NCBI GenBank assembly: GCA_964187785.1
Contig: OZ076410.1
Span: 24,924,001 to 24,988,000 of the forward strand
Direction of reading: 5' to 3'
Origin: Amphiscolops sp. MND2022
Taxonomy: Eukaryota
Length of the DNA: 64,000 nucleotides
This document shows, in pieces, positions 1-22,241 of the stretch; the first letter of the stretch is position 1; each line of letters begins with the position of its first letter. Both the position numbers and the translations under genes were made by a program. The notes below the pieces were generated by a model, which saw nothing but the letters and a program-made list of their open reading frames with translations, was not told the DNA's origin and did not search any database.

Positions 1-110
1 AGATTCTTTCTGTTTATTCTCCTGCTGTTATGTCTTTGTAATGTTTTTGCTGTAATGTAATTTGAGAACTTCCTGAGCCTACAAGATCTCCAATTTTTTC
101 TTACATTTAG

Positions 111-1845
111 GTTAATTCTTGGAATCTCAAACGATCGCAGCTCAGATTTCCCGTCACTCATGCCACTGTTTCTGGGATCAGACGACACGTTTCTACCTAC
201 AACAGTCGATCCAAAATCTGGATACCGAAGCAATGTTCCAGTTCCTTTCCGCACTGACCTACCTGCGACGTCTCTCGTAAGCTACGACGACATACGATGC
301 GTTTGCCCTGATGTAACGCATATGATAACAAGATGTGTCGAAAATGACCTGAAAAAAATTGCACAGAAGCTTGTTGATGACAAGCATCCCAAAGAGAAAG
401 AGTCACTTGCGCGTTTGGAAGAAAATTTGACCAAACGAGATGTGAAAAAACCGCACTTCCAGTTCGATACGACTACCAAATCTGGACAGAAGGTGAAGAC
501 TGTCGGTGCGGTGTCACTTTCTGGGTCGGGAGCACTTACAGCAATTGCCGACAAAAAAGAGTTTGCTGATATGATTCCGGACATGACAAACTTATTCGAA
601 GGTGTATGGAAAGACGAAGAAATATTAATTGGAAGCAATGACAATGAAAACTCCGTCAAGGTGCTGAAACAGATGTATCCGTCATTGTTTTCGAAACCAA
701 ATCCCACGAAGAATGAAAACTATGGGTACATGTCTATTTCAGATGCAGCTGAGCTGTTGAGGGAAAGCCTCAACATGTGCACTATTCTTTTGCGCAGTTC
801 ACGGACCGGTCTTGACATTACAAGTTTCACCAAGTGGTCAGAGACGTATTATCAAGTCTCAATTTTACTTTTTGGCAAAGATAAAGGACTTACGCCTTAC
901 AAGCTGAAGATGCTACTTTATCCACAACTAATTGAAAGCGGACATATTATAACTCCTTGGAATCATATGTGCGAGGGTTTGGAGAAGTCTAACCATAATG
1001 CAAACAAAGCATTCCAGAGCAAGACGATGAGAGGCGGAGGAAAGCAGTCAACCCAGGACCCCCTTTTTTTCGAGCTTCAATTTTCCTTGCTGAAGCTATT
1101 CAGGAAACAATCCCTTAAAGCAAAACAAGTTTCAATTAACGATTTCCTATCGAAAGCCCGAGGAATTGTTGGCATCGCCAATCAATCTGACGAAGAATCG
1201 AAGACTTACAATGATATTTACCTGCAGCCTGTTTCGTGCGCTTCGATTGCTGTCGGTGAGACACGGAACAAGAAAAACCGATTTTTGGGATTGTACTTTT
1301 TTGTAGTGGGTAACTTTGGTTCAAAGAAAAATGAAGATGTCCAAAATGCGATAACAGAGATGGGCGGAACAGTTTGCACCAAAGCAAGTGCTGAAACATT
1401 GTTATTTTCGCACTCAACTTGTCCAAACTGCTTTGTTGTTATGAAGGACGAAAAAGAATTGAGGAAGTCGACGGATACTCTCAAAGAATCAACGAACGAT
1501 AAAGAGTTGATGGACGTGCCAAAGAAGTCTGTATCGGAAAATGCGGCAACTCCAACAGGACTTCTATGTCGCAAATTTGCTGGAGGAGATTGGAAATTCA
1601 TTCACATTTCGTTTGTTTTTGATTCGTTAGAATCAGATCGCATCCTGGATCCGAAAAAGTACGAAATGTTACCCGGACCAAACGTCAAGAAATTGCAAGT
1701 TAAAGATGTTCGCCCTTTGTTAGCGACGCAGTGCAGTGAACAAGGTCAAAAAGTTTCTGCTATCTCAGCCCTGAAGAGCCACAGAAACAAAAGAAAGATC
1801 GAAGAGGAAAAAGCAGCGGATACTGAGGAAACATTATCAACATGA
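111..1845 (+). CDS. RAG1/Transib-like DDE transposase C-terminal half fused to a BRCT-like domain (5' part probably in an upstream exon outside the window)
   Basis: Uninterrupted 561-aa ORF (160-1845) that stays open upstream to a likely splice acceptor (ttttttcttacatttAG at 109-110). CPDVTHMITRC aligns with RAG1 SIDALHCDIG; LTPYKLKMLLYPQLIE with ITNYFHKTLAHVPEIIE; MCEGLEKSNH with ASEGNESGNK (catalytic Glu). The C-terminus has a BRCT-like pattern: FLGLYFFVVGNF...ITEMGGTV...WKFIHISFVFDSLESDRILDPKKY. Confidence 0.6.
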
Positions 1846-2042
1846 ACCTAATTTCGTATGTTTCTTTTTGTTAGTTGTGTAAATGTTCGTTTTCACAACA
1901 TTTTTGTATATTTTGTTCTGTTCAATTGAGTTGTTCACGTACAAACTTATGTCGTTCTTCTTGAAAAGTTGTTGAGGGCAAAATCATGGTTTTTCTGAGT
2001 ATTTGATATGGGAGAGGTCGGTTTCTGCTAGTCGGAAAAAAT

Positions 2043-2455
2043 TGGAGCATTAAACAGTGAATTCCGCTGTTAGCGAGTGTTGCGCTTCACAATTATTGTC
2101 TTCCAAAATCGCAGTGCAGAATTTAGGGACCTATGTTAATACATGTACAGCGGAATCCGCAGGCGAATGTTAATACATTGCGATTTCGGTTTCCTGTACC
2201 ATACCTCAAGAGAATATCCAAATAGGCTTAGTAGCATAAAACAGTGGATTCCGTGGTTAGCGAAAGTGTTGCGCCTCATAACAGCGGAACCCGCTGTTTT
2301 GTATTACAGATTGATGCCTTCCAAAAACGCTGTGCGGAATTTAAGGACAGATAGTAATACATGCACAGCGGAATCCGCAGACGAATGCTAATACATTGCG
2401 ATTTCGATTTCCTGTACCATACCTTAGGAAAATATCCAAATCTACGTAGCAGTTT
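2043..2455 (+). repeat. Tandem array (about 2 units) of a 218-bp palindrome-rich repeat
   Basis: cagcggaatccgcag recurs at 2148 and 2366 (218 bp apart). The unit contains several CAGCGG-N3-CCGCTG-like palindromes. Confidence 0.9.
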
Positions 2456-2577
2456 GAAATCTGCCTAATAGCTGAGAAATTCATAAAATTATACTAATAT
2501 CATCAATTCTCTATCTAATGTATGTTCAATAAAAATCAGTAAAATTAAAAATTTGAAAAATTATTGAAAAGTTCTCA

Positions 2578-5500
2578 TCAGAATCTTCTTTGATGGGAAG
2601 TCCCGGGGGACCCCGAAGGCACTGGGATGTCACAGGAACGCCAGCTAGACATCTGTTCGAATGTAACTCCAAACTAGAAACAAAATTCCTCCATAATGAA
2701 TAGAAACACATATTTTGTTTCACCGACAAGCAACAGGCAAAAAAACAAAAAACTTCTAGTCAGGCAAAGTCAAAAAGTATTATGAAAGTTTGCATGAGAA
2801 TTGCATACTTTCTGGCAAACGGTGTCAATGGAAATTTCGACAGTATGACATTTCGTCTTCTGCACAATTAATGCAGATGTAACTCCATACTAGAAACAAA
2901 ATTCCTCCGTAATAAATAGAAACAAATATTTTGTTTCACCGACAAGCAAAAGGCAAAAAAAAACAAAAACAAAATGCAAAAAACTTCTAGCTAGACAAAG
3001 TCAAAATGTATTATGAAAGTTTGCATGAAAATTACATACTTTCTGGCAAACTGTGGCAATGGAATTTTCAACAGTGTGGCAATTCGTCTTCTGCACTATC
3101 ATAGCAGCGTTGAACAGCTGTTGCTTTTCAAGCTTGCCCACGCATGCAGACGAACTAAAATACAACAACCTCTGTGTTTAGGAATATGATTGTTTCATAA
3201 TTATTTCAAACAGACTATATACAAAACTACATGTATCATGAAAAGTGATTTTATAATTTAAAAAATAATAATGTACCTCATCAAACTCGCAATGTGCGTG
3301 AACAAAAGTCGGGGAAAGTGGGGATAACATTGATCGTAGGGGTCATGCCGGTACCGCTCTTCAGAAAACTCTTCTGCAGCTTTCTTCACGTGCAGGCGGT
3401 GAATGAAGTTGACTCCCAGAGCAACTGACATGCCGAAAGTCTCCACCGCGTGGATCATCTTCGAAGGAAGAATCAGCGCCTGTCCCTCGAAGAGAGTGAC
3501 TTTTGCGCAGCCGCCCATGTCAAGCTCTTCATGGGTGCCAAAAAAGAGGTCTCTTCTAAACAATCAATAACAGTAATAAATTTGTCCCGGTTATCAGTCT
3601 TACATGCATAACAGAGAGAAAAGCACTGTGTAGTGTAAGTATAAACAATTTTACTTGCCTGGGGAGATTCTTGAACGCCTTGAACAAGTCAACGTTTCTG
3701 GCAGTGGGCCTCACAACATGAAAAACTTTAACTCATGTAACAATAGTCCGTCAACCACCAAACACTTGACTTATTTAAAAAAAACACGATTTTCATTTTA
3801 CTTGTACTAAAACCTGTTACCAACCTTTGGCCAGATAATACAAGACACTTGTGGATGAAAAATCCTGGTGGAACCTCGTGATTGCGCCATTTTGTGAAAT
3901 CAGCAAATAATTCGATTCACGCACTGGACGCAATTCTTCAGGTGTCTGTTCCCAGTTCATGTGCCCAAGGGAAACCTCGTCTAGAAAGCTAGGCTTCTTG
4001 AAAGAGGCTCCTGGGCACTTGTTTGCCTCGGCATCGATGACGTTGAAGAATTTGGGGGGGTCACTCTCCATCATCTCGGTAACTCTGTTACCTGGCACAA
4101 CTTTCTTCTCTTCCTAAATAATAAATATCAGGTCAGGTACATGTATTCTCGAATTTATAACAGAGAACAAAATTGTTGTTTGTATCTCTTTTAGCAGTTC
4201 CATTGACTCTCCTAACCTCGAACTTCGTCGTCAAATAACGAAGTGTTACGGGGTTGCCAGTGTAATTCTGCATCATTTGTTGAACAGACGACATTCGGCA
4301 CATCTTCTCTCTGGTTAGCTTCGTGTTGAAGCCGGGGATGGCCAAACCGTCACGGATGACGAAGACATATTCCCCGTCCAAAAAAGCAGGGTCTGACAGC
4401 AGTTCTGGTGTGACTTCTCCTGCTGTTATGTCACGCCGCATCGAGGTAGCATTTGGAATCTAAATTTACTCCATGTTACATTACACAGAAGTCAAAACCT
4501 TATTCGTCAATCCAGAGATTTATATCTAGAGAAAAGACCTAATTCTTAAAACCAGAGATTTAAGTCTAAAGAAGATATCTTATTCGTGAATCCAGAGACT
4601 CAAAACCGATTAGATCTAGAGTCCGGAGAAGAGATTGCATTCTAAGATCCTGAGAAGAGATCTCATTCTTAAATCCAGAGAAGTTCTTACTTGACTCATA
4701 AGGTCACGTAGTTCCCAGATGCTAGCGAACGATTTCATGAGGTTCGTGTTCGTCATGTTCATCCTTCGCATGGTAAGCGTACATCTGGTCAGGTTTGGAA
4801 GTGTCGCTGGCATTCGTGATACACTCTTGTGCAAACGTCGTCGTTTCTGTTGCCACTTTTCCTAAAGCATTATCGGTTTTAGAAGTTTAAATCCCTCCAA
4901 ACCATTATGCTTTTGAAACTAGAAATCCATAAAAATTACACATCCCGAAAAATATTACATGAAACATGAAACAGTCATTCAAAAAAATACATACACATTT
5001 GGGCTCTTCAACTTGAATGTGGTTGACTTCTGCAATCTTGAAGGCTTCCAAAGCTACCATGGAAGCGATTGCCTCTTCTTCTCGCTTGTCCTCCAGAAGA
5101 ACAACAGACTCTTCCACAATAACTTCTTCTGCCTCTGTTGCAAAATGGAGGGTGGAAGAGGAGGAAACAGGCTCAGGCTCCACAAGACTGCTGATTTCCG
5201 GAACCTGTTCAAAAATAAATCATTTGAACTCAAAAATGTGAATCATTCAAAATCAAACAGAACCTATGACTTAATTCTTATTCATGCCCATAAGCTACGT
5301 TTTTATTAAATTTATTTGTTTGATTGAATTACCTCCCACCAGGGTGGTGAAGTCGATGTCGCACTGGTTTCTCGGACTTGGACTTCTCGTTTAACCAACT
5401 TAGATGGTGGCGGTTGGTTAAAGAACTTCCTCGTCCTCCCTTCTGCCGAGAAGGCCTTCTTGCAGCCCGGGTAGGTGTCTCTTACGAGAACAAAGTTTTC

Positions 5501-5761
5501 CAGTGTGGGCTCCAGTAATTTGGCCCGATCTTCCGCTGTTAGTTCATTTCGAGCATTCCAGCATCGGAGTGTCAGCACATGATCAGCAGTCTGCTGCACG
5601 TCCTTGAAGAAGGAGCCATCTGTAGGAGAGCCACAAAACATGCACTTCATTCTTGTGCTGCGCGTCTGCTCTCTTTTACCGCAACTCTGATTCATGTGCC
5701 GGGTTAGATTACCCTTATTTGAGAGGGTCAGTTGGCACGTGGGGCATTGAAATTGGGGCAT
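2578..5761 (-). CDS. Zinc finger (C2H2/C2HC) plus JmjC histone demethylase-like protein, KDM2/KDM7 (JHDM1)-type; 10 exons, about 661 aa
   Basis: Hand-assembled, phase-consistent exons with no internal stop: 5761-5333, 5204-4995, 4861-4691, 4459-4217, 4113-3825, 3731-3659, 3555-3277, 3154-3040, 2889-2809, 2673-2578. JmjC motifs: NYLLISQNGAITRFHQDFSSTSVLYY, KVFHVVRPT, DLFFG, GQALILPSKMIHAVET, LGVNFIH. N-terminal fingers: CPTC-x12-H-x4-C and CMFC-x17-H-x5-C. An acceptor at about 5777 suggests a further upstream exon. Confidence 0.85.
2662..3095. repeat. About 216-bp tandem duplication corresponding to duplicated exon plus intron units of the JmjC gene
   Basis: tgtaactcca...tagaaacaaaattcctcc occurs at 2662 and 2878. 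On the minus strand each unit carries a TTTCTAG acceptor and a CAGAAA|GTATG donor. Confidence 0.85.
4498..4682. repeat. Degenerate short (about 40-bp) intronic tandem repeat
   Basis: Recurring cttattcgt(c/g)aatccagaga and attcttaaa(a/t)ccagag motifs inside JmjC intron 3. Confidence 0.6.
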
Positions 5762-6439
5762 ATTTCCAGAGAGAACCTTCAAACAAAAAAATTTTAGGCC
5801 AAATACAATTTCCTACAATCAATGTCTTAATTGCAGAGGTTGGAAAATAAATACTTCAATAGCATTTGATCTTAGTTTTCAAGAGATTACAGATACTTTT
5901 CCTAAATCCAGAGGTAAGCATCAGTCTTACATGCCGCGCGTGCTGTTGCTTTTCCTACTTCCAGAGATATGCATCAGTCATACATGCAATCATGACACAA
6001 TGCACAAGTTAGTAGGCAGATGTTGCAATCGCAAATGTCCAACGGAAACTGTTACTGAAGCAACTTTACGTGATATTTACTTTATTCGATTTGATCTCAC
6101 TGCACCAACTGCGCCTGAGCATACTGTATTCTCGTTAGATGAAAGTTTCAAACTCTAAATGACATTTCTCTGGGTTTCGGAATGAGCGACTGCTCCCAAG
6201 TACCCTGCGACGACTCCCCAGCCACCTTGGAGGAACGGATCACAAAAGCTTCAGTAGACTAGTTTAGGCACTTTTATAGGCGCTTATAAGACAACTACAG
6301 ACATATAGACACTGATAGAATCTTAAGAGATTCTACTTGACTTCTAGTTAATTAGGATTTCAACCTGGGAAATTTGAGATTACTGGTCCCAAAATGCATT
6401 TTCAAGAGAGGGTTCAAAAAAAATAAAATTCCCAAACAC

Positions 6440-7080
6440 AGTTTCATGCTACTGAGCAGATTTGGATATTTTCTTGAGGTCTGGTACATGAAATGGAAAT
6501 CGCAATGTATTAACATTTGCCTGCGGATTCCGCTGTACATGTATTAACATAGGTCCCTAAATTCCGCACTGCGATTTTGGAAGGCATCAATCTGGAATAC
6601 AAAACAGCGGGTTCCGCTGTTATGAGGCGCATCACTCTCGCTAACCACGGAATCCACTGTTTTATGCTACTAAGCATATTTGGATGTTTTCTTGAGGTAT
6701 GGTACAGGAAATCGAAATCGCAATGTATTAACATTCGCCTGCGGATTCCGCTGTACATGTATTAACATAGGTCCCTAAATTCCGCACTGCGATTTTGGAA
6801 GGCATCAATCTGGAATACAAAACAGCGGGTTCCGCTGTTATGAGGCGCATCCCTCTCGCTAACCACGGAATCCACTGTTTTATGCTACTAAGCATTTTTG
6901 AAAATTTTCTTCAGGTATTGTACAGGAAACTTAAATGGCAATGTATTAACATTTGTCTGAGGATTCCGCTGTACATGTAATAAAATTTGTCCTTAAATTC
7001 CGCACTGTTTCTTTGGGAGGCAATAATATGGAGTATAAAACATTTTGTTGTTATGAGGAAAAAATCGTTTGGTGCTCAAT
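6440..7080 (-). repeat. Inverted tandem array (about 3 units) of the same 218-bp repeat
   Basis: gtattaacataggtccctaaattccgcact occurs at 6541 and 6759. It is the reverse complement of the 2043-2455 unit; the same short spurious ORFs (MYSGIRR..., MEGINLEYK...) recur. Confidence 0.9.
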
Positions 7081-7293
7081 GTTGTTCTAGATTGTGTAAC
7101 ATAGATTGTATTTCATTGTTATAGATAGGGTTTTATTCATATGAGTGTCATTCGGCCAATCCAAGATACATGTGTTTCACGCATTCATCTTTCAAGTCCT
7201 GATGAAAACTTGTCGGGCATTCTTTCGGGCCAAAGAACGAACAATGAGAAAAAGTGCTGATGACTCAAGTCAAATGATATATGAGGTGTGGTT

Positions 7294-7452
7294 TTAACAC
7301 TTCCAAATGATTAAGAACCGCATCAGGCGCTGCCAAAAATTATAATAGAAATAATTATAAAATTATAATCATTATAATTATATAATTACAGTTATTTTCA
7401 TTGGCAGCGTCTGATGAGGCTTTTTTTTAATTTGTCAAAGTGGAAGTGTTAA
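7294..7452. mobile_element. Small foldback MITE with TTAA flanks (piggyBac-like target duplication)
   Basis: TTAA-CACTTCCA...TGGAAGTG-TTAA, with inner arms catcaggcgctgccaa / ttggcagcgtctgatg around an AT-rich spacer. Confidence 0.6.
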
Positions 7453-7604
7453 ATTACTATGGTAGCAATCAGCAGTTAAGTAATTAGCAGTTTCAGTAGT
7501 ATTATAATACTATTCATAATACTATTCATAATATTATAATTTTGATCTACTAGGAATCAGTCAATTTGAATTGTACATCGTTCTATTTCTCGAAAAAACC
7601 TACA

Positions 7605-9570
7605 ATGTCTCTGCAAACGCATCAAATTCAGTCACAACCATTAGAAGATCTTGGAAATTTGACAGAACTTCAATCGCCTCAACTAGTTACCTCAACGCCA
7701 GTGCAACCCGAGACGTTTACACTTACACTACCTCCTCCTCCAGTTCCATCATTAACCCCTCTCTCACGATCGCATGAATATTTGACTACCCCTACCGGAA
7801 AGAGTCCGGCTGCAGTTCGACAATATTCACAACCGTCATATTTTGATTGGAATCAATCGCAATGGCTCAACATGGATGGAATTTCGCACGAACTTCCTCC
7901 GAACATGTTTGGTGAAATTCTTCCACCACCTGAACACTCGCCGGACCTTTTTCTTCCTCCGCTTGAAGCTTCGTCGACTGAGCAGCTTGAAGAAAGCCGG
8001 AAAAGAGCAACTAGCTCTGCAACAATTGATATTCCGGAGGTCAGTTTTTGAATTTCAATTGAAAATTTCAAACTGAAGCGGGAGATTTTCACCTTCTAGA
8101 ACCACATAGAGCACGAAAACAAATTTGTTCATCATAACAGCGGAATCCGCTGTCTTATGTTTCATATCATTGACTTCCAAAAGAGCGTTGCGGAATTTAG
8201 GGGCAAATGTTAACACATGTGCAGCGGAATCCGCAGACAAATGCCAAAACATTGTGATTTCAGTTTTCGGTACCATACCTCAAGAAAATTTCCAGCTGCC
8301 GCCTTGGCTGAGCGGTGACGGATTTCCATTTTCTTTCAGCTTTACTTTCAAGAAAAAAACTCTCAAGAAAAACTTCATATTTCCCAGATTTTAAAATTCA
8401 TTTTGTGTTTGAATTTGAAAACCAATTTGCATATGAATTTGTGATTGAACTTGTTGAGTATTATTTGACTTTCATTCTAATTTTTGAAGTTGTTTTTGAA
8501 ATTTGTATTCAATATATTTAGAAAATATCGAAGACTTCTATCAGGGTTACTTGTGGCGAGACGACTGAAGAAGAACTTGAGATAGCCATCAGGGACATTG
8601 TAGAGCAGTACAAGAAAACGGAAGCTCTGACACAAAAGCAAAGAACAATGCTCTTTCGTGCTTTGGCGTGTTTCCTCTCAAAGCATGCATCACCACCAAT
8701 GATGGACAAAGGTATCATAGAGCTGACAGTGCATGCTGTTACACAGGCCATCGTTTCCTTACAAGAGGACACAGACGATGAAACAGCAGTTGCAGCAGGA
8801 ATCACAATCTATGTTGAGCCTGCTGAATTTTCTCCGATAAGATCGTCGCACACTGTTCCTCGATGGGTAGTGGACGGTTTGAAAACATACTACTGGAGGC
8901 AAGACCGCACTTCCTGCCAAAAGAAGGTCTTGATGTTTTCACCAGGGTTTTCGCAGATGACGAAAGAACAGTGAGAACTTACCGCTTTTTCGTCAATTCC
9001 AATGGCTCAACCCATTTCAAAGTGCGCCAACTATGCGACCAGTTCAAAGACACGGTAAAAACTTAAACTTCAATCTAGAAACACCTAAATTGCTTCAAAT
9101 GTTTCCAGGGTTTACCTAAGTTTGCGTATTTTAGCTTCAGCAGCACATCGATAACCCTCATGAGACCACCCTAGAAAGACATGTTGCGAGTTTTCTGCCG
9201 TTTCGAAGCGATCCAGGTTTCACCATTGGCAAACAGAAGCAAGTAATCAATCAGGTTTTGTTCTTTTTCGTTTGGTAATAAAATATTGACTTTCTAAGCT
9301 TTCGCTTTCAACAAAGGAATGGAAATTCTTTTTTAGGTGAAAAGTCAGACAGAAAAGTATTCCCACAAAGAGGTTTCCAAGGCAGTGAAACACAGACTTG
9401 ACCAATTACGGTACCATCGGCAAACAATTAGAGCGCAACATTGGATCAAGAACAATGGTTGGTTACTGCCAAACTGCAGTGATATGGAGCAGCGCCTGAA
9501 CACCTTTTATGCGAGGATGGGCTGGGACAAATGCGACATCAAGAAAACGATGACTATAGCTTTAAAACAG
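7605..9570 (+). pseudogene. Spliced gene of unknown function, probably disrupted
   Basis: Pro/Ser/Gln-rich first exon ends at GAG|GTCAGT (about 8039). An in-phase acceptor at about 8521 opens KISKTSIRVTCGE... There is an apparent frameshift in a T-run near 8828 (continuing FSDKIVAHCSSMGSGRFENILLEARPHF), a possible in-frame TAG near 9172, and a last visible exon 9337-9570 ending CAG|GTTAGG. Confidence 0.5.
8130..8295 (+). repeat. Third, partial copy of the 218-bp repeat (intronic)
   Basis: cataacagcggaatccgctg...gcggaatttagg...cagcggaatccgcagac...gtaccatacctcaaga matches the unit at 2277-2430. Confidence 0.85.
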
Positions 9571-10322
9571 GTTAGGTTGGGTTACGTCGCGTTCGAGTTT
9601 TTTAGATTGCAGTGTATTAGATTACGGTAAAATTTCCCAATGGCACAAATCGAAAATCGAATGGGGCAAAAAAATCAATTGTTTTGGTGCCATAGGGTAA
9701 GCAACTAAAGAAGTGTTTTGCCTGTCTGGAGCTGCCCAATGCTAAGTGATCGATGGTTATTAGAAAAAATCATTGCGTTTGGATGCTTTGTGTTTTGTAT
9801 AGATGAAGAGCACATCATCACGGACCAGTATAAGCAGGCCTCAGTTCAATCCAATCATCTGCAAAGGAGACAGGTTGTCATACGAAAACCAGATGAGTTT
9901 AAAAGACCGAATTGACAACCATCGTTTCCTTACAAGAGGACACAGACGATGAAACAGCAGTTGCAGCAGGAATCACAATCTTGGGTTACGTTAGGTTAGG
10001 TTGGGTTACGTCGCGTTCGAGTTTTTTAGATTGCAGTGTATTAGATTACGGTAAAATTTCCCAATGGCACAAATCGAAAATCGAATGGGGCAAAAAAATC
10101 AATTGTTTTGGTGCCATAGGGTAAGCAACTAAAGAAGTGTTTTGCCTGTCTGGAGCTGCCCAATGCTAAGTGATCGATGGTTATTAGAAAAAATCATTGC
10201 GTTTGGATGCTTTGTGTTTTGTATAGATGAAGAGCACATCATCACGGACCAGTATAAGCAGGCCTCAGTTCAATCCAATCATCTGCAAAGGAGACAGGTT
10301 GTCATACGAAAACCAGATGAGT
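9571..10322 (+). repeat. Identical direct duplication of about 330 bp next to the gap, with a 63-bp piece of the upstream exon between the copies
   Basis: 9571-9898 equals 9995-10322, and 9918-9980 equals 8748-8810. Confidence 0.85.
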
Positions 10323-10522
10323 NNNNNNNNNNNNNNNNNNNNNNNNNNNNNNNNNNNNNNNNNNNNNNNNNNNNNNNNNNNNNNNNNNNNNNNNNNNNNN
10401 NNNNNNNNNNNNNNNNNNNNNNNNNNNNNNNNNNNNNNNNNNNNNNNNNNNNNNNNNNNNNNNNNNNNNNNNNNNNNNNNNNNNNNNNNNNNNNNNNNNN
10501 NNNNNNNNNNNNNNNNNNNNNN
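10323..10522. other. Assembly gap (200 N)
   Basis: Run of n characters. Confidence 1.
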
Positions 10523-12364
10523 AAAAGTCTTTTTGTCACCAATGCCCTGTTTCTGAAGAGCAAGAGTAAAAACGTAAATGTGATCAGGGACTGGGGAGAG
10601 ACCTTGGGGACGAGAAGAAAGAAGGACACTGAGTTTGAAGTTATTTTTTGCCTCACGATTGTAGTACAATCAGAAAAAAAGCATTCTTTTTCAACTATGT
10701 TAGTCACTAATGTATTTGTTGTTCTGTTTTGAGACACACTGCGTTTAAAATATAAAAGTGCCTATCAACCCGCTCCAGCACCTACAGGGCCCGTTGGCGG
10801 CCACTGAGTATGCGTAATCTCAATGAAAAGATTGCACTCAGGTGACTTCGATAGCCGTTGGGAGGAAAAACCCGATTTTTGTGTTTTTCACTACTACGTC
10901 TCGTAGAGTGTTTTTCAGCAGACCACCGATGTTATGATGGTCCGACCACTGCGCAAATCGCTTCAGCGAGCCATAGCACGTGTGTATAGTGTGAAAGTGA
11001 GGCCATTACAAAGCACTTTTCGATGCTCAGACAGCGGCAACCGAGTAATTTTTGTGCACATATTGCCAAAATCAGCTGTTTTTTCGTCAAAACGCACGTC
11101 CGAGGAAAACAATCAGAATACCCGCAGGGATTTTTTTAATTAGTACTATTGGGGGTACGACTGGGAAGAAGCCAGTAAGGCCTGCAAAACACAAAAACAA
11201 CGAAGTAACCCAGCAGCTGTCGTGGGTACTGCAATCTTTGGGTGAATGGAAGTAGTGCCGCGAACGACGTCACCTCTTCGTCATAGCTGGTGGGGACCTT
11301 CACTCCGCGTCCTCACAGTTCCCATACATGGCAAAGAAGCTGGAATGAGCCCACAAAACCCTTTAAAACATAATCCGGTTAAGCCGGATGGTTAATCTCC
11401 ACAAGAATGAAAAGTGTCAAAACGGTACTTTGCTATTAAACGGTTATTTCTCATCCCAGACCTCGGAAATACGCAGGAAACGCAGGAATTCTGTTAGAAG
11501 AAAGGTCACAAAGCTAGATAAAAGCAATAAAAACAATCTAGGACCCTCCAATTAGTTTTCCTAAATCCGGACCTAACTTGCCGGAAAGCAGGAAAAACTC
11601 CTATTTTGACGCAAAGGTGGAAAAATTCTTTTGTTGGGCGCCATAAAAACTATTCTAGATGTAACGTCAGGCTAGTCAAAGGAACATCAAAGAAGTGGGA
11701 CAATGCCTAGATTGCTTGAACAGGAGACCAGTACTTACTACAACCTAGACATTAGTATATATCCCAAAAAGGTCTCCTGAAATGGACTATTCCATTCGTC
11801 TAAGGAAGCTCCTCAGTTAGAGCTCAAAGGCGACGTGCAGGCGCTCTCAAAGTCCGAACACGCCCCACAAGTCTGTAAAAACAAATCCAGGGGTTCCTGT
11901 GTGTTCCTACATACCTCGGAGGTCCAAATGGTGTTTAGCCAAAGTACATTATATTAAATGAATAACGTCTAAAACAAACAAAAGTAGGGGTCAAACATCA
12001 CCAAATATCTGCAAAAACCACAAATACGGTACAACAGACTGAGGAAGCATCAGGCGTCAGTGTCAGCTAGTCTTGGACCGGCTAGGTGTCACATTCAAAA
12101 TATGCAAACTTCTGAGTTTCTCTATCGCTTGGGCCATTCTTCGGGTTCCGCTGGTAGCTGGGACGTCATCCGAGGGGGATGGCACCACCCGGCGATTTCG
12201 GGGATTTTTCTATGGCGGGGTGTTCTCTCTCGGACTGGGTGGGGTTGTTTTTTGTGTGCGTTTTTTCGCTTCTTCCACGATTTTCGGTACCTGCGTGGTC
12301 GGCTATTTTGAATCGCGCATTTCAAATATTTAATCGAAATTTTGTAATTTTCGTTCGCCGACTG

Positions 12365-12892
12365 CTGAACGTTACATAAGATTCTTACATGTTCGTGAAA
12401 CCCTTGGTAAGAATCTTGGCAAGATTCTCATCAAAAGCGCCAAGAATATGTACGATCTTACAAGATCTTGCAAAGAGTTTCAGGAGAAAAGCTAACACAA
12501 GTGAATGAAAACAAACAAAAACCCACGCCAACTTCGGCGTTATTAGCGTACGTATTCTACCACGGCTGTTTGCGCTTCCAACTAAGCTATCATGTTCTGA
12601 ATTTTAATACTTTGTGTTGTCTTATATACAATACTTCAAAGAATGATAGTGTAGCTGGTAGTGCGAACAATGGCAAAGTACTAATAACCAAAATTGTTGT
12701 TTATTTTACACGTTCCCTATATTATTTTCTTGACACTCTTGATAAGACTCTTAACAAGATTCCTATCAAGAACTTCAAGAGGTTTTTGTAGAGCAAGAAC
12801 AAACAATGTCTTATCAAGGCTTTCAAGAGTAAACGGGTATATGTAAGAATATTCAAGATCTTGGCTAGTTTCAAGATATTTTGCACTGGGTA
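12365..12892. repeat. Fragment of an AAGATCTT-rich non-autonomous element
   Basis: Many aagatctt/aagattct variants. It ends in gcactgggTA, resembling the cccgggTA end of the 14177-15232 element; no matching left end was seen. Confidence 0.4.
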
Positions 12893-16535: not shown

Positions 16536-19500
16536 TCATTTTAGTTGTTGGTTAGAGGCTTTGTCTTCAAGCTGCGGTCTTCGGGTCTTTGTTGCATTGG
16601 GTTTCTTCTTGGTTACTAAGTGTATTTCATTTACCTTTGGGTATTGACTTTCTTTGTGACTTGATTCGTTGTTGCGTTCATCCCACTCCTTTGCTGGCAA
16701 AAACAAAGATAACCGATGAACTGGCCGCACGTAGGATCCTCTTCGGGTCCGGATCTCGACGACGCGCGTGATTTGGTCATTTCCTTGGAAAATTTTAGTG
16801 ACCATGGCCATTGGCCACATCAACGGCGGTGTGTTGTCTTCTTTCAGGAAAACGATGTCCCCATCTGCAAGTTTTGTTGTTCTTCTGTCCACTTCTGTCG
16901 TTGTTGTAGCGTTGTTAGGTATTCTTTAGACCATCGCTTCCAGAAGAAGCTCATGGCGTGTTGTCGTTGTTGAAACCTTCGGACAAGCGATACGTCTGCA
17001 GAATCGAGTAGCTCAATATCGGGAACAGCTAGTAGTGGGCGTTCGATTAGAAGATGAGCTGGCGTGAGAGCAGGAAAGTCGTTGGGATCATTGGATGGAG
17101 CTGTAAGCGGACGAGAATTCATTATGGCTTCGATCTGGTTCAGCAACGTAGTCAATTCTTCGAGGGGTAGCGTAGTTCTTCCAGTTGTTTTCATCAGATG
17201 GCGTTTCAAGGATTTGACTGCTGCTTCCCACAGGCCACCGAAATGGGGAGAACGCGGTGGTATTGTGAGCCATTGTATCTTGTGGTACGCAACAAAGGGT
17301 TCCAGGGCGTGGTTGATCTTCTGTTCAGCTAGCATTCTTTGTAGTTCAAGCTCGCTATGGCTTCCCGTGAAGGTGCGCGAGTTGTCGCTGTAGATTGCTT
17401 GAGGCAACCCACGGCGTGCGAAAAATCGTTGTAGGACGGAGAGGCAGGCTTCCTTCGTAAGTGTTTCAACTGGCTCCAAATGTACGGCTTTTATTGAAAA
17501 GCAAATGAAGATGGCGACATAGACTTTCTTACTTTTCGATTTTGTTGAGATTGGCCCACAGTAGTCGAGTCTGGAGTGGGTGAAGGCTGAGGATGGAGAG
17601 ATGCGTTCTTCGGGTAGATCTCCCATTACCGGCTGGCGTTGGCGGCTGTTGAAACGGGCGCATTGAGGGCATCGTCGAATTGTCGATTGTACAATGCGGG
17701 TACCATTTGGTATCCAGACGGTTTGTCGTAAGGTTGACAAAGTCAGTTGCCAACCTCCGTGGAGGCAATGGAGATGTGTTTCGCGGATCAGTGGTGCGAT
17801 GATAACTGACTGTCGAGGAACAATGACGGGAAACTTGAATCCCAGTTGGTAATTGCTTTTGGCTAGACGGTCACCAACTCGGAGGACTTGGGTTTGTTCG
17901 TCGAAAAACAGAGCAAGGGCTTTTAATGAGCTCTTGCGGGGCAAACGTTTACCTTGACGAAGGATTTCAAATTCCGGTAGATGATATCCTTGGACGGTTC
18001 TGAATATCAAAAGTCTAGCTTTTTCAAGTTAGTCGGCAGATGGGGTTGTTATCGGGTTCGGGAAGGACGGACGGCGAGTTCTTCTTTCTTCTTTCGGCTG
18101 TTTTGTTTGTTTCAAATCGGAAACAAACCGAAGGACGAATGCGAACACCTTCACAAGCTTCTTGAAACTCGAAATTTTGTTCGCGGCCTTTAGAATTGGG
18201 TTGTCGGTGTCCCTTGGGTCTTTGTACCTCCAAGTTTGCGGCTGGGCTGGTTTGCAGGTGACTTGATTTCAGGAGGTTTTATTGGAGATAATGGTTTTTC
18301 TTCTTCTTCTTCTTCGTCTTCTTTTTCTCGTTCGTTTTCATCAACAAGGTGGTTGTTGCTTTCCAGTGTTGTTGTTGAATCGAGATGTGTTGAATCTTCT
18401 TGTTGTTTGCAGGCTGGCAGGCAAACAACCGTATGTAATTCGCCTTTTGTGTTATTGTAAGTTTCGTTGCTTACAATAGTTTGGCGGTAGTTCTCAACAG
18501 CTTGATGAGATCTCTTGGATTCTGTGAGGCTTTCTTTCAGCAGACCTATGTCGTTTCTTGGCCACGCGGTAGCTGGCATGCGCAGCCACTCGGGTCCTTG
18601 CCACCAGAGTTGGTGATCTTTAAGCTGTTGAAGCGACATACCTCTGCTGGCACAGTCAGACGGGTTGGAGTCGGTGGGAACGTGGTTCCATTTTTCTGCT
18701 GGGACTGCGTTTTGGATCTTCGCCACGCGATTGGCGACGAAGGTTTTCCAACGACTCGGATGATTTTTTATCCAAGCCAAAGTGACGGTGGAATTGGTCC
18801 AAGCAAAGACATCAAGATTCGAAAATCTTTCGTCTTCGAGAGCGTTACTGATGGATTGAATCAATTGTGCTCCCAAAAGAGCTGCACAGAGTTCTAGTTG
18901 AGGAACACAAATGGCTTTGATAGGGGCAACTCTGGTTTTGGCCACGAGGAGTTGGCACCTGACGAGTCCTTGAGAGATGGGTTGACGGATGTACACGGTT
19001 GCGGCGTAGGCGGTTGTTGAGGCGTCACAAAAGACGTGAAGTTGTAGAGGTTTTTCTTTGAGAGGCGCATTCTTATGCAGAACGCACCTTGGAATCTGGA
19101 CTTCTTCGAATGACTGAAGATGCTGACGGAGGTTCTGATACTGTTGCGACAAATTCTGATTGAGCGGGTCATCCCAGCTCAATTGATCCAACCAAAGTGC
19201 TTGTATAAATGACTTCAACTGGATGACGATTGGCAAAAGGAGACCCAAAGGGTCGAAAATGCGAGTGACTTCGGATAGAATTTGTCGCTTGGTTTGCGGG
19301 GATCCTTCTTATGGTTTGACGTTGTAGGTGAAGATGTCGTGTTTTGGTTTCCAGACGACGCCAAGTGTTTTGATGTAGTATTCTTCGGTTTCTATGTGCT
19401 TGGTGTCTGCTGTTTCCCGATAGCTTTCGGGAAAGCGATCGACAATTGAAATATCACTTGAGGACCACTTGCGGAGTTGGAAACCAGCTGTGGCAAGACG

Positions 19501-22241
19501 TTCGATGAGAAAATCTTGTAATGCTTTGGCTTCCATCTGAGAGGAAGCGCCGGTTAGTAGGTCGTCGACGTACATGTCGAACTTTAGTGCTAAAGAGGCG
19601 GCAGGGTGCTTGGTTGTCTCGGCTAGCTGTACTAAGGGTCGTATGGCATGAAATCCGGCAGATGTCACACCATACGTGTTGCGAGTCATGCGGTAATGTT
19701 TTAACGGAGATGACGGCGATTCCTTCCACAGCAATCTGTGGAAGTCCTTATCTTCTTTATCGAGGAGTATTTGGCGGTACATTTTGGCGATGTCGGCTGA
19801 CAAAGCCACTTTGTGGAATCGGAATCTGATTAAGATGTCAAAAAGATCCTTTTGGACTTTCGGACCGAGCATCACATCATCGTTGAGTGACACTCCGGAG
19901 GTTGTTTTCGCCGAAGCGTCGTAATCTACACGAAGTTTTGTTTTAGTGCTTGATTCCTTCAGGACGCAGTGGTGAGGTAGGTAGAAGTTTTTGCTGGATT
20001 CAATGGGGATTTCGGAATCCGGGATCTTCTCCATGTGTCCCAGATCCAGGAACTCTTCGATGAAGGCTGTGTATCTGGCGTAGAGACTTTCATCTCTAAT
20101 AAGTCGTCGGAGAAGTGTGTCGAGGCGGCGTTTCGCTTGTTGGAAGGAATCGCCCAGAGGTGTGGCGTTTTCTTTGAAGGGTAGTTCGACAACGAATTGT
20201 CCGTTTTGATTGCGTTTGGTCGTTCTCTGGAAGTGTTCTTCACAGGCTTGTTCTTCTTTGGTGAAGTGGCGACTATGTGGAAGCTCTTCTATCTCCCAAA
20301 TTTTTTCAAGGTATCTTCTGAAATCAACTTCATTGAGCTGAAGCATCTTGTGAGCGATTGAATCGGCATTGAAGGCGAACCTCCAATGACAACCCAACCG
20401 AACAAAGAATTACGGTAGGTTATGTTGTTGTTTTCTTTGATTCGGGCGTCCAGCTTGATTGTTTCATACAGCTCCGCTCCAAGAATGAGGTCAATTCCTG
20501 ATGGTGTATTTAATGTCGGGTCGGCAAGTCTGAGGTTTGGAAGATGCTTCCAAGACGTTGTTGAGACTTTGGATGAAGGCAGGACATTAGTGAGCTTTGA
20601 CATTACAAAGGCTCGCACTGGGATGGCTTTCTCGTTCTTCGGCGTGAGGAGGAAATCAGTGGTTCCCTGATGATGTAGCTCATCCTTGGCGCCCAGGCCA
20701 AAGATTCGCGTTTGATGTTTTCGAAGCGGTAGACCTAGTCGCTTGACTAGATTATCAGTGATCAGGTTGCTTTGTGAACCTGAATCCAAAGGTGCTCGGC
20801 AAAAGGTGGTTTCACTATTTGCCAAGATAGGAATCATTGCTGTTTGCAAGAAGATGTTTGCGGTTCCTTGTTGAGAAAATGAGGTGGCAATGATTTGATT
20901 TTCTTGCGGTGACGGCGTTGTAGCAACAGAAGTTTCTTCAGCGGCGAGAGTCGGGTTGTTGTCTTCAACTGTGTTGTTGACGGATCTAGTTGGTCGAGAT
21001 GATTGCAGATGAAGAAGGGTATGATGCTTCAAGTTGAATTGACGGCAGGTTGTTCCTCTGCAGTCTTGTTGTCGATGACCTGCTTTCAAGCAATTGAAGC
21101 AGAGTTTTTTCAACTTGACAAATTCCGCTCTGTTAGGGACAGTGAGAGCTTTGAACTTTGGGCAGAGATGTAGCTTGTGGAAGCCATTGCAACACTCGCA
21201 TTGGACTTCGGATGTTGCGACGTTGACGTTGTAGCTGCGTTGAGATGATTGTGAATGCTGACTGTTCTGACGAGTTGTAAAGCGGGCTTGTGTTGGAGTT
21301 GAAGTTGGCGGCGTTGAGAGAGTACCTGCTTCCAATGCCTGGCATCTGGCGTCAAGGAATTTCTTGAGGTCGTCGTAGGTCTGAGGTTCTGTTCCAGGAG
21401 TTGAAAGTTCCCAGAATTTTCGTGTTTTTGCTGGCAGTTTCTCTGTTATGAGATATACCAGAAAAACGTCTTGTTGATTGACTGGTTGTCCCATATTTTC
21501 CAGGGCTAGGCGGTGTTCTTCTACTGTTTCCAAAAGTTGTCGAAGGTCTTTGGCTGTTTCCTGAGTGAGTGGCTTCTGGACAGCAATTGCGTGCATATGA
21601 GCGCGCAATATCATGCGGTTGTTTTGGTAGCGGTCTCGTAGCATCTTTAGAGCGACTGTGTAGTTAGCATCAGTGATTGTTACCGATGATAAAAGTTTTG
21701 CTGCGTCGCCCTTCAGAGACGCTTTGAGATATTGTAGTTTTTGGCTGTCGAGAAGTGTCGGGTTGTTGTGAACTGCTCCTTTGAAGAGGTCGAAAAACGA
21801 TGTCCAGGTGAGGTAATCGCCAGAGAATGTCGGCAGGTCCAGTTTGGGTAGCTTTGTTGTTGTTGTTGAAGATGGGGTGCTTCTTGTGGATGACGGTAGA
21901 GACAATGATGTTGAGGTTGATGCAGCTGAAGTGTTGGTTTTGATGAAGCGATCTATTTGATCGAGTTGTTGAACCAACTTGTCATCATATTCTTCCGACT
22001 GTAAGATGTCGTCTTCGAGGGTTGCTTCATCGTCGAACTTAGCTTGGATTTTGGAGTTGAGATCGCTGAGAGAGTTTTGTTTCCTGGCGAGGTTTTTGTG
22101 AAGTTAGTCTAAGCGAATTAGGGCATCCTCAAGGGAAACCGAACGTGTCGGCAGAATCAATGATTCTGCTCCTGTCCAGTATTTTGTGGCGACCGCTTTG
22201 TGAGAAGCACGACTTTTCTTTTGCATTTCAATTTCTGTCAT
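16536..22241 (-). pseudogene. BEL/Pao gag-pol polyprotein, broken by stops and frameshifts
   Basis: Gag KLPKLDLPTFSGDYLTWTSF (DUF1759-like) with Cys/His knuckles; protease LDSGSQ; RT YLPHH, DYDAS, DIAKMYRQI, MYVDDLL; Pao RNase H LHVFCDAS, WWQGPEWL; integrase H..H..C..C, LDYCGP, YSDN, WEAAVKS; DUF5641-like FWKRWSKEYL and WPMAMV. Confidence 0.95.

Follow-up and report, generated by a model that had tools for sequence, protein, structure and literature searches.

A 64,000-nucleotide stretch of the genome of Amphiscolops sp. MND2022 (GCA_964187785.1, contig OZ076410.1, G000:C2 in our numbering, positions 24924001-24988000; hereafter the window) raises the question of whether a transposase-like open reading frame (ORF) and a zinc finger and JmjC gene of the histone demethylase type, which lie tail to tail at its left edge, belong to a single mobile element, and if so, what kind of element this is. 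An earlier sequence-only reading had taken the pair for a candidate RAG1/Transib-like transposon or a domesticated gene pair, with ProtoRAG as the parallel. Using the window together with the 10 kb immediately upstream (L010; coordinates below 1 lie upstream of the window, such that L010:4579 is -5421), we consider it likely that the two genes are parts of an autonomous cut-and-paste DNA transposon of ~19.7 kb, with window positions 1-10322 forming its middle. Good confidence, though short of certainty, applies jointly to the element, to its placement in the CACTA-Mirage-Chapaev-Transib (CMCT) clade, and to the interpretation of its accessory genes.

Copies, inverted ends and target duplications

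The visible part of this element copy extends from -5421 (L010:4579) to 10322, i.e., through positions 1-10322 (+) of the window, as delimited by an alignment with six other copies (~99%), all of which share the left boundary. The transposase exon within the window has 44 genomic matches, including 14 at 99-100% identity and others down to 90%, and at least 40 large copies of the element with 90-100% identity are dispersed in the genome. The JmjC region matches the genome in the transposase loci, and its spacing and orientation relative to the transposase are unchanged among the copies compared. Therefore, the pairing of transposase and JmjC gene is not due to chance, and the co-occurrence at fixed spacing and orientation that had been proposed as a check is found across these genomic copies.

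The window copy runs into an assembly gap of 200 N (10323-10522), and the sequence past the gap is unrelated to the element, with the right end and the remainder of this copy being absent. A 200-N run also occupies the corresponding region in five of the six other copies, marking this region of the element as difficult to assemble. In a gap-free copy, the full length between the ends is 19,710 bp. As the sequence-only reading had supposed, both ends of the element thus lie outside the visible window sequence, the left one at -5421 and the right one lost in the gap.

The left ends of all six copies read CATTACGACGCATAACCCTACAC... and abut unrelated flanks. This 23-nt end sequence is found at 546 sites in the genome (276 forward and 270 reverse), compared with none for its reversed control, and some of these sites form inverted pairs separated by 350-760 bp, representing miniature derivatives of the element. 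Five miniatures have 29-bp inverted ends (5'-CA...TG-3'), and each of the five is flanked by 2-bp direct repeats (TA, GT, GT, AC, and CT). Four full-length copies have the end sequence again in inverted orientation (one mismatch) 18.3-19.7 kb from the left end, and three of the four show a 2-bp duplication (AA, CA, and AA). Overall, 8/9 insertions carry a 2-bp duplication and none a 5-bp duplication; at a chance of 1 in 16 apiece, this is far beyond coincidence. Target cutting is therefore staggered by 2 bp. The element ends (CATTACGACGCATAACC...) start with CATTACG and have the terminal CA alone in common with the CACNNTG heptamer that resembles a recombination signal sequence (RSS). The suggested search for CAC-initiated inverted repeats and a 5-bp duplication therefore revealed inverted ends, with a different start and a shorter duplication than had been anticipated. 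The proposal of a large DNA transposon is supported by the multiple copies, the inverted ends, and the target duplications. In addition, two copies of the element lie tail to tail within 32 kb at G000:C4:41176932-41208924, with their left ends at 41176932 (+) and 41208902 (-).

The transposase and its relatives

The transposase is encoded by two exons with 1,072 codons in total. Exon 1 (L010:8461-9944, +) is a 495-codon ORF from the ATG at L010:8461, and it is separated from exon 2 by a 166-nt intron with the donor GTGAGC at L010:9945 and the acceptor AG at 109-110 (tttag/G), the 3' part of which occupies window positions 1-110 (+). The homologues P0011 and P0013, which have no intron, read straight through the sequence of the exon junction (...PFLL-R-LILGIS...), and therefore the ORF that had been described as an uninterrupted gene is exon 2 of a complete gene: it is indeed open from 111 to 1845 (+; stop 1843-1845), with exon 1 lying upstream of the window. 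Exon 2, for which 72 database homologues were found, encodes the insertion domain, the catalytic glutamate helix, the C-terminal domain, and a BRCT domain. It is worth noting that exon 1 contains imperfect VPNNVPINASVPNNV-type peptide repeats (L010:8783-9139), which are poorly modelled and variable among homologues.

The residues expected of a D-D-E transposase are conserved. A D-x-x-H ... R-x-x-E-x-D motif (CPDVTH...RCVENDL; 304-351, +) has invariant or nearly invariant D, H, R, E, and D in the family alignment, and both glutamates of the catalytic glutamate motif CEGLEKSNH (970-996, +) are present in 40/40 sequences. The D-D-E triad (D245, D325, and E615/E618 in P0013 numbering) is kept across 44 sequences, including the window copy, and the first aspartate and the glutamate are 370 residues apart in P0013, compared with a spacing of 362 residues in mouse RAG1. 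The BRCT domain at the C-terminus (1282-1662, +) was identified by Pfam (BRCT_2, E 7.7e-7, 29.8 bits vs. a cut-off of 27.3), and the corresponding part of the structural model (residues 714-877) resembles the BRCT domains of Rev1, 53BP1, MDC1, BRCA1, PARP1, and XRCC1 (Z ~10, VIA-align).

The fold was examined with an AlphaFold model of P0013, a homologue 43-44% identical to the window exons, which was built with a 44-sequence alignment including both window exons (predicted local distance difference test, pLDDT, 77.9; predicted template modelling score, pTM, 0.78). In a Foldseek search of the PDB, the top 49 matches to this model were all RAG1, HzTransib, or BbRAGL (best E 2e-7), and pairwise VIA-align comparisons gave Z 17.7 against mouse RAG1 residues 459-1008 (411 residues, root-mean-square deviation 4.0 Å), Z 15.4 against HzTransib, and Z 15.3 against BbRAGL. 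Judging from this model, the transposase is predicted to have the RAG1/Transib core fold. The structural side of the earlier RAG1/Transib-like assignment is thereby upheld, and a lack of homology in structure searches, which would have spoken against it, was not encountered; the assignment does not extend to a Pfam RAG1 match, or to the ends and duplication, which are not of the Transib kind. The model also matches CACTA transposase clusters (Pfam Transposase_21/DUF4218) in the ESM Atlas over 430-436 residues, such that CACTA/EnSpm transposases match it about as extensively as RAG1, and unannotated eukaryotic clusters match it equally well or better than the CACTA clusters. Its neighbours in the AlphaFold DB are uncharacterised transposase-like proteins from many eukaryotes. 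No Pfam Transposase_21 or DUF4218 match was found among the homologues scanned. A protein-atlas feature search gave a weak RAG1 lead alone (score 0.76, rank 17), and in a profile search of 1.84 billion representatives, the best 150 of 604 relatives were all close family, with no bridge to a named superfamily.

The CMCT clade is defined by CA..TG termini and 2-5-bp duplications (Kojima 2025, PMC12730594), both of which are found in our element (5'-CA...TG-3', 2 bp). HHpred matches to RAG1 have been reported for non-Transib CMCT members, ESTA among them (PMC12730594). According to a 2026 preprint, Transib duplications are canonically 5 bp long and those of CMC elements 2-4 bp, with length varying even within Transib. 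The 2-bp duplication alone is therefore not decisive against Transib. From the 2-bp duplication together with the CATTACG end, we infer that the element belongs to the CMCT clade and is not a canonical Transib or ProtoRAG element. Mirage makes 2-bp duplications, and in behaviour our element appears nearest to Mirage-type elements of this kind. Like the CMC/CMCT lineages (CACTA(EnSpm), Mirage, Chapaev, Plavaka, ESTA, and Lanisha; Yuan & Wessler 2011, Kojima 2025), it has CA...TG termini and a duplication in the 2-5-bp range, and its 2-bp non-TA duplication stands at the short end of the 2-4 bp CMC range (2026 preprint). By contrast, it differs from these lineages in the BRCT fusion and in its JmjC, SET, and Tudor-like cargo, which is not reported for them in the literature searched.

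It is unlikely, although more probable than the other alternatives discussed below, that the element is a true Transib/RAG-like transposon of the ProtoRAG type, in which the convergent JmjC protein replaces RAG2 as the chromatin-reading cofactor. RAG1, HzTransib, and BbRAGL are the only strong matches among solved structures, the JmjC gene lies tail to tail with the transposase in the window's family as RAG2L does in ProtoRAG, and enzymes of the KDM7/PHF8 type normally pair with methyl-lysine readers. The similarity to Transib and RAG1 is indeed extensive at the level of the model, comprising the core from the dimerization and DNA-binding domain (DDBD) and PreR to the C-terminal domain (CTD), with an RNase H fold and a large insertion domain (Z 15-18, ~410 aligned residues). 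The D-D-E triad is common to both, as are the D-x-x-H motif and, at the catalytic glutamate, an E-G-x-E-x-x-N signature. However, the sequence identity is only ~10-12%, and the Transib/RAG1 systems have a 5-bp duplication and a CACNNTG end as opposed to 2 bp and CATTACG without an RSS-like heptamer here. The canonical spacings of the C(2)C and H(3-4)H zinc motifs are not evident in our family, where a partly kept C-x-C (22 and 34 of 42 sequences) and an H-x-C beside the catalytic E may take their place. Pfam gives no RAG1 match for the protein, and a PF12940 profile search of the whole genome returned nothing. In addition, the element is far larger than Transib/RAG1 elements, its transposase is fused to a BRCT domain, and it carries three chromatin genes, whereas no RAG2-like Kelch-propeller gene was found between the left end and 10322, the part visible here. 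The model is matched by CACTA/EnSpm transposases as extensively as by RAG1, and relatives differ in where the JmjC gene lies and which way it points, as described below. The ProtoRAG parallel is thus not sustained, and placement elsewhere in the CMCT clade is preferred.

Accessory genes and their linkage to the transposase

The gene convergent with the transposase, at 3001-5761 (-; start taken at 5761, stop 3003-3001), encodes a C2H2 zinc finger and a JmjC domain of the KDM2/KDM7/PHF8 type. It had been thought to reach near 7080; with the start taken at 5761, the stretch at 6437-7090 is instead an array of 218-bp repeats. The distance between the two tails is 1,155 bp (stops 1845 vs. 3001) rather than the ~730 bp given earlier. 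Exon 1 (5333-5761, -) encodes a C2H2-type finger (Pfam zf-C2H2, E 1.6e-4) followed by a Cys/His-rich stretch, and is 42% identical to its counterpart in the divergent relative L050 (E 2.7e-23). The iron-binding H-x-D (TRFHQDF) is in the exon at 3825-4113 (-), which aligns with KDM2A residues 94-192, KDM7, and PHF8. The exon at 3659-3731 (-) ends in a GC-AG intron (3658-3556, donor AG/GCAAGT), the second of the core introns; its junction, which colinearity with the unspliced L050 homologue confirms, restores the PRRDLFFG of that homologue. The exon at 3277-3555 (-) contains the third iron ligand (MIHAVET) and matches PHF8 (E 8.2e-5), KDM2A, and KDM7. The last coding exon in the model, with the stop, is at 3001-3154 (-), and conservation between subfamilies falls just past it, at ~2985; the following segment (2583-2985), which is a tandem duplication of the 3' end of the gene, is poorly conserved between subfamilies. 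Otherwise, conservation between subfamilies was too uniform to outline exons, and Pfam searches of single JmjC exons and of the right-hand exons gave no match. The four core exons were placed by checking the junctions against the unspliced L050 homologue, and the acidic linker exons (5204-4460) are uncertain. Of the intact 10-exon gene described earlier on the minus strand, a spliced, convergent zinc finger and JmjC gene is thus retained, with the four core exons verified.

The spliced JmjC core comprises 264 residues and shares 48% identity with the L050 ORF (E 3e-50) and 32% with the ORF of another relative, L045, which itself passes the Pfam JmjC cut-off (25.8 vs. 24 bits). Among PDB sequences, two of the exons (E 8e-5 and 6e-3) have colinear matches to PHF8, KDM2A, KDM7A, and the KDM7 homologue of the worm. 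The Fe(II) ligands H-x-D...H are present in the spliced core (TRFHQD and MIHAV), as are a Thr and a Lys, the latter before VFHVV, that correspond by alignment to the residues binding 2-oxoglutarate in PHF8 and KDM2A. On these sequence grounds, the protein is assigned to the KDM2/KDM7/PHF8 demethylase type. The colinear exon matches and the H-x-D...H ligands are held in common with the JHDM1-type enzymes (KDM2, KDM7, PHF8, and PHF2). Unlike KDM2/KDM7, our protein has no detected PHD, CXXC, or F-box/LRR modules and has a C2H2-type finger region at the N-terminus instead, it has one residue fewer in the turn before the conserved Lys, and its gene is transposon-borne and multi-copy.

The sequence-only reading was right to single out the JmjC gene as the convergent partner, and it missed two further genes with a possible relation to chromatin. 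The first (hereafter the barrel gene) lies upstream of the transposase on the opposite strand and is transcribed away from it, in two ORFs (L010:7751-8158 and 6580-7275) that are parts of one gene, as the relative L047 has a single ORF of 446 codons. A model of this protein has an overall pLDDT of 61.9 and contains three small beta-barrels with pLDDT 80-90, which resemble the triple Tudor domain of SETDB1, the plant Agenet readers of H3K9me2, the tandem Tudor domains of FMRP and UHRF1, and the KOW domains of SPT5 (E 7e-5 to 1e-3). A protein-atlas search with the barrel protein gave no match, and we refer to it as Tudor/Agenet-like at the level of predicted fold. The second gene is represented in the window by its N-terminal exons (7554-9627, +), which were recognized by exon homology and run into the gap. 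The segment 8522-8971 matches L047:3160-3477, just upstream of a SET-domain ORF on the same strand (L047:1589-2353). The SET domain passes Pfam in the relatives L046 and L047 and is closest to SETD8/KMT5A (E 4e-4), suggesting that the relatives of this third accessory gene end in a SET8/KMT5A-like domain.

The linkage of these genes to the transposase was examined at ten divergent loci, with transposases 31-55% identical to that of the window (seven from ERZ25074608, two from ERZ25071281, and one from GCA_029980085.1). At each of the ten, one or more of the three chromatin genes lie no farther than 10 kb from the transposase: seven loci have the JmjC gene (one of these weakly), eight the barrel gene, and four the SET gene. 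Gene order and orientation vary among the loci; for instance, the JmjC gene points the same way as the transposase in L050, whereas in L030 and L051 it lies upstream of the transposase. The tail-to-tail layout that had suggested an analogy to RAG2 is therefore not conserved. L030 has the JmjC H-x-D exon twice, at 30-230 and 2835-3035 (2.8 kb apart), in both cases upstream of the transposase and on its strand.

Ratios of nonsynonymous to synonymous divergence (dN/dS) between the window subfamily and a ~85-92%-identical subfamily, which amount to effectively one independent pair (C5, C1, and C4 hardly differ from each other, and C6 has decayed), are 0.13-0.24 for the transposase, 0.18-0.21 for the zinc-finger exon, 0.08-0.16 for the JmjC core exons (0.12-0.14 at 3825-4113 and 0.11-0.16 at 3277-3555), and 0.12-0.42 for the barrel gene. 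These low ratios, which had been called for as a check and are near 0.1 in the JmjC core, indicate that the gene set evolves under purifying selection. Together with the linkage to divergent transposases, they bear out the view that the JmjC gene is part of the element. The synonymous divergence between the subfamilies is 0.3-0.5 for the JmjC exons (3277-4441) vs. 0.12-0.21 for the transposase (112-1842 and L010:8461-9942), which suggests module exchange between element lineages or differing rates.

This difference hints at separate module histories, and it could be taken to favour a second alternative, in which the chromatin genes are passengers, i.e., host genes captured or trapped between repeats without service to the element. 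The JmjC gene is also bracketed by inverted 218-bp arrays, a layout that could arise by capture or nesting: three tandem units lie upstream of the gene (6437-7090), and ~1.9 units in the inverted orientation lie at 2051-2459. However, the listed genomic matches of the 218-bp unit are at the coordinates of known copies of the element, and the unit therefore looks element-internal. One further unit is at 8125-8294. The JmjC segment was also considered as a nested, independent element and rejected, as none is flipped or absent in ~30 copies. The gene set stands beside transposases 31-55% identical in three assemblies, and the JmjC core has kept its catalytic residues and a dN/dS of ~0.1 between subfamilies, making it quite improbable that the genes are mere passengers. 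Finally, both frames are open in the window copy, as they would be in a domesticated host pair of RAG1-like and JmjC genes fixed at one locus, which the sequence-only reading had allowed for; such a pair is most improbable for an element with at least 40 dispersed copies (90-100%), inverted ends, duplications, and miniatures, many copies of which carry stops or frameshifts.

Decay among the copies is uneven. In the six near-identical copies, the transposase is disrupted by a stop or frameshift in five and has lost 30 bp in frame in the sixth; in the JmjC core exons, no frameshift was found in any of the six, and one copy has a single stop. In the window copy, both transposase exons and the checked JmjC exons are open. 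The third accessory gene has a 1-bp deletion near 8893 that is private to this copy; a 181-codon exon, which is open over 181 aa in the six other copies with their one additional base, is thereby divided between two frames. In addition, the left terminal CA, which is CA in all other copies, reads TG in the window copy (L010:4577-4578, i.e., -5423 to -5422), TG being the reverse complement of CA, and the remainder of the 29-bp end is intact. Given the terminal TG, the accessory-gene frameshift, and the unassembled right part, the window copy is probably immobile.

Other features of the window are less directly related to the element. A direct repeat with a period of 424 (second unit 100% identical) at 9565-10322 runs into the gap, and after the gap, 11105-12376 belongs to an unrelated ~1.2-kb repeat family with at least 40 genomic copies at 78-89% identity. 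A BEL/Pao long terminal repeat (LTR) retrotransposon occupies 16844-21977 (-), with its pol region in four ORFs (DUF1759 gag-like, RVT_1, Peptidase_A17, and integrase H2C2/rve/DUF5641), and accounts for the strong GC skew at 16-22 kb. The skew at 24-34 kb is opposite, and a search for a large inverted repeat linking the two stretches found none.

Proposed chromatin roles and their significance

Several points weigh against the joint interpretation of the element, its clade, and its cargo. The predicted fold is that of P0013 and not of the window's own protein, and the clade placement is drawn from fold, termini, and duplication length rather than from a phylogeny. Pfam returned no family but BRCT for either transposase exon or for 39 homologues, RAG1 (PF12940 and the split models) included, and phmmer and profile hmmsearch against PDB sequences did not return RAG1; in these searches, no sequence link to a named transposase family was found. 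Since ERZ25074608 holds a 98% copy as well, it appears to be from the same or a very near species, and the cross-species support comes from ERZ25071281 and GCA_029980085.1; the dN/dS estimates, as noted above, come from a single pair of subfamilies. The SET domain is seen in relatives, and the window copy of that gene enters the gap. The demethylase activity of the JmjC protein and its substrate would follow from family resemblance.

With these points taken into account, it is still probable that the accessory proteins function and are of some service to the element. What that service might be is more tentative, and an anti-silencing or chromatin-licensing role, suggested by analogy, is a proposal to which we give slightly less than even weight. 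In this proposal, the JmjC enzyme would clear the chromatin of the element, or of its targets, of repressive methyl marks; by analogy with KDM7/PHF8, these might be H3K9me2, H3K27me2, or H4K20me1, and the SET8-like gene would point to H4K20me1 as a shared substrate. The barrel protein could guide the JmjC enzyme to chromatin. The BRCT domain may couple excision breaks to host repair, a role that BRCT domains serve in end-joining polymerases. Taken as a whole, the idea of a recently active animal transposon lineage with a self-contained histone-methylation toolkit (a KDM7/PHF8-like eraser, a SET8-like writer, a multi-Tudor-like reader, and a BRCT-tagged transposase of the RAG1 fold), which would rewrite chromatin at its own copies or targets so as to evade silencing or license cutting and integration, is possible and is held a little more doubtfully than the anti-silencing role itself.

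Transposons are usually seen as targets of histone silencing and not as carriers of its enzymes. The nearest precedents are DNA-methylation enzymes, namely the TET/JBP proteins on fungal DNA transposons and the DNA methyltransferases that occur on some retrotransposons. The fungal TET/JBP transposons (KDZ, Plavaka, ESTA, EnSpm, and Harbinger-like; PMC12730594) likewise have a stable second gene for an Fe/2-oxoglutarate dioxygenase that can erase a repressive mark, and some of these lineages belong to the CMCT clade too (PMC12730594). In those fungal systems, however, the mark is DNA 5-methylcytosine, whereas our element resides in an animal host and has an enzyme of the histone-lysine demethylase type, together with a SET-type writer and a Tudor-like reader. 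Among the Mutator-like elements of Arabidopsis, the VANC protein of VANDAL21 (Hiun) is a transposon-encoded factor that reverses the host's epigenetic silencing of the copies of that transposon. It binds DNA in a sequence-specific manner and has no enzymatic domain, whereas the candidate factors here are enzymes and a reader. Our literature searches found no paper combining Transib and JmjC, and nothing relevant on transposon-borne JmjC, SET, or Tudor genes or on BRCT-fused CMC transposases; as far as these searches reach, the element is, as had been suggested, undescribed.

Overall, genes of a histone demethylase and a histone methyltransferase type and for a protein resembling methyl-lysine readers appear to co-evolve with a transposase of the RAG1 fold. 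With copies of ~99% identity and defined ends, the element lends itself directly to the design of transposition and demethylase assays. If the accessory proteins do act on the element's own chromatin, this would be a directly testable counter-defence at the level of histones. It would also be a further, independent case in which a RAG1-type cutting enzyme is coupled to marks on chromatin, and would bear on how RAG came to depend on the reading of H3K4me3.

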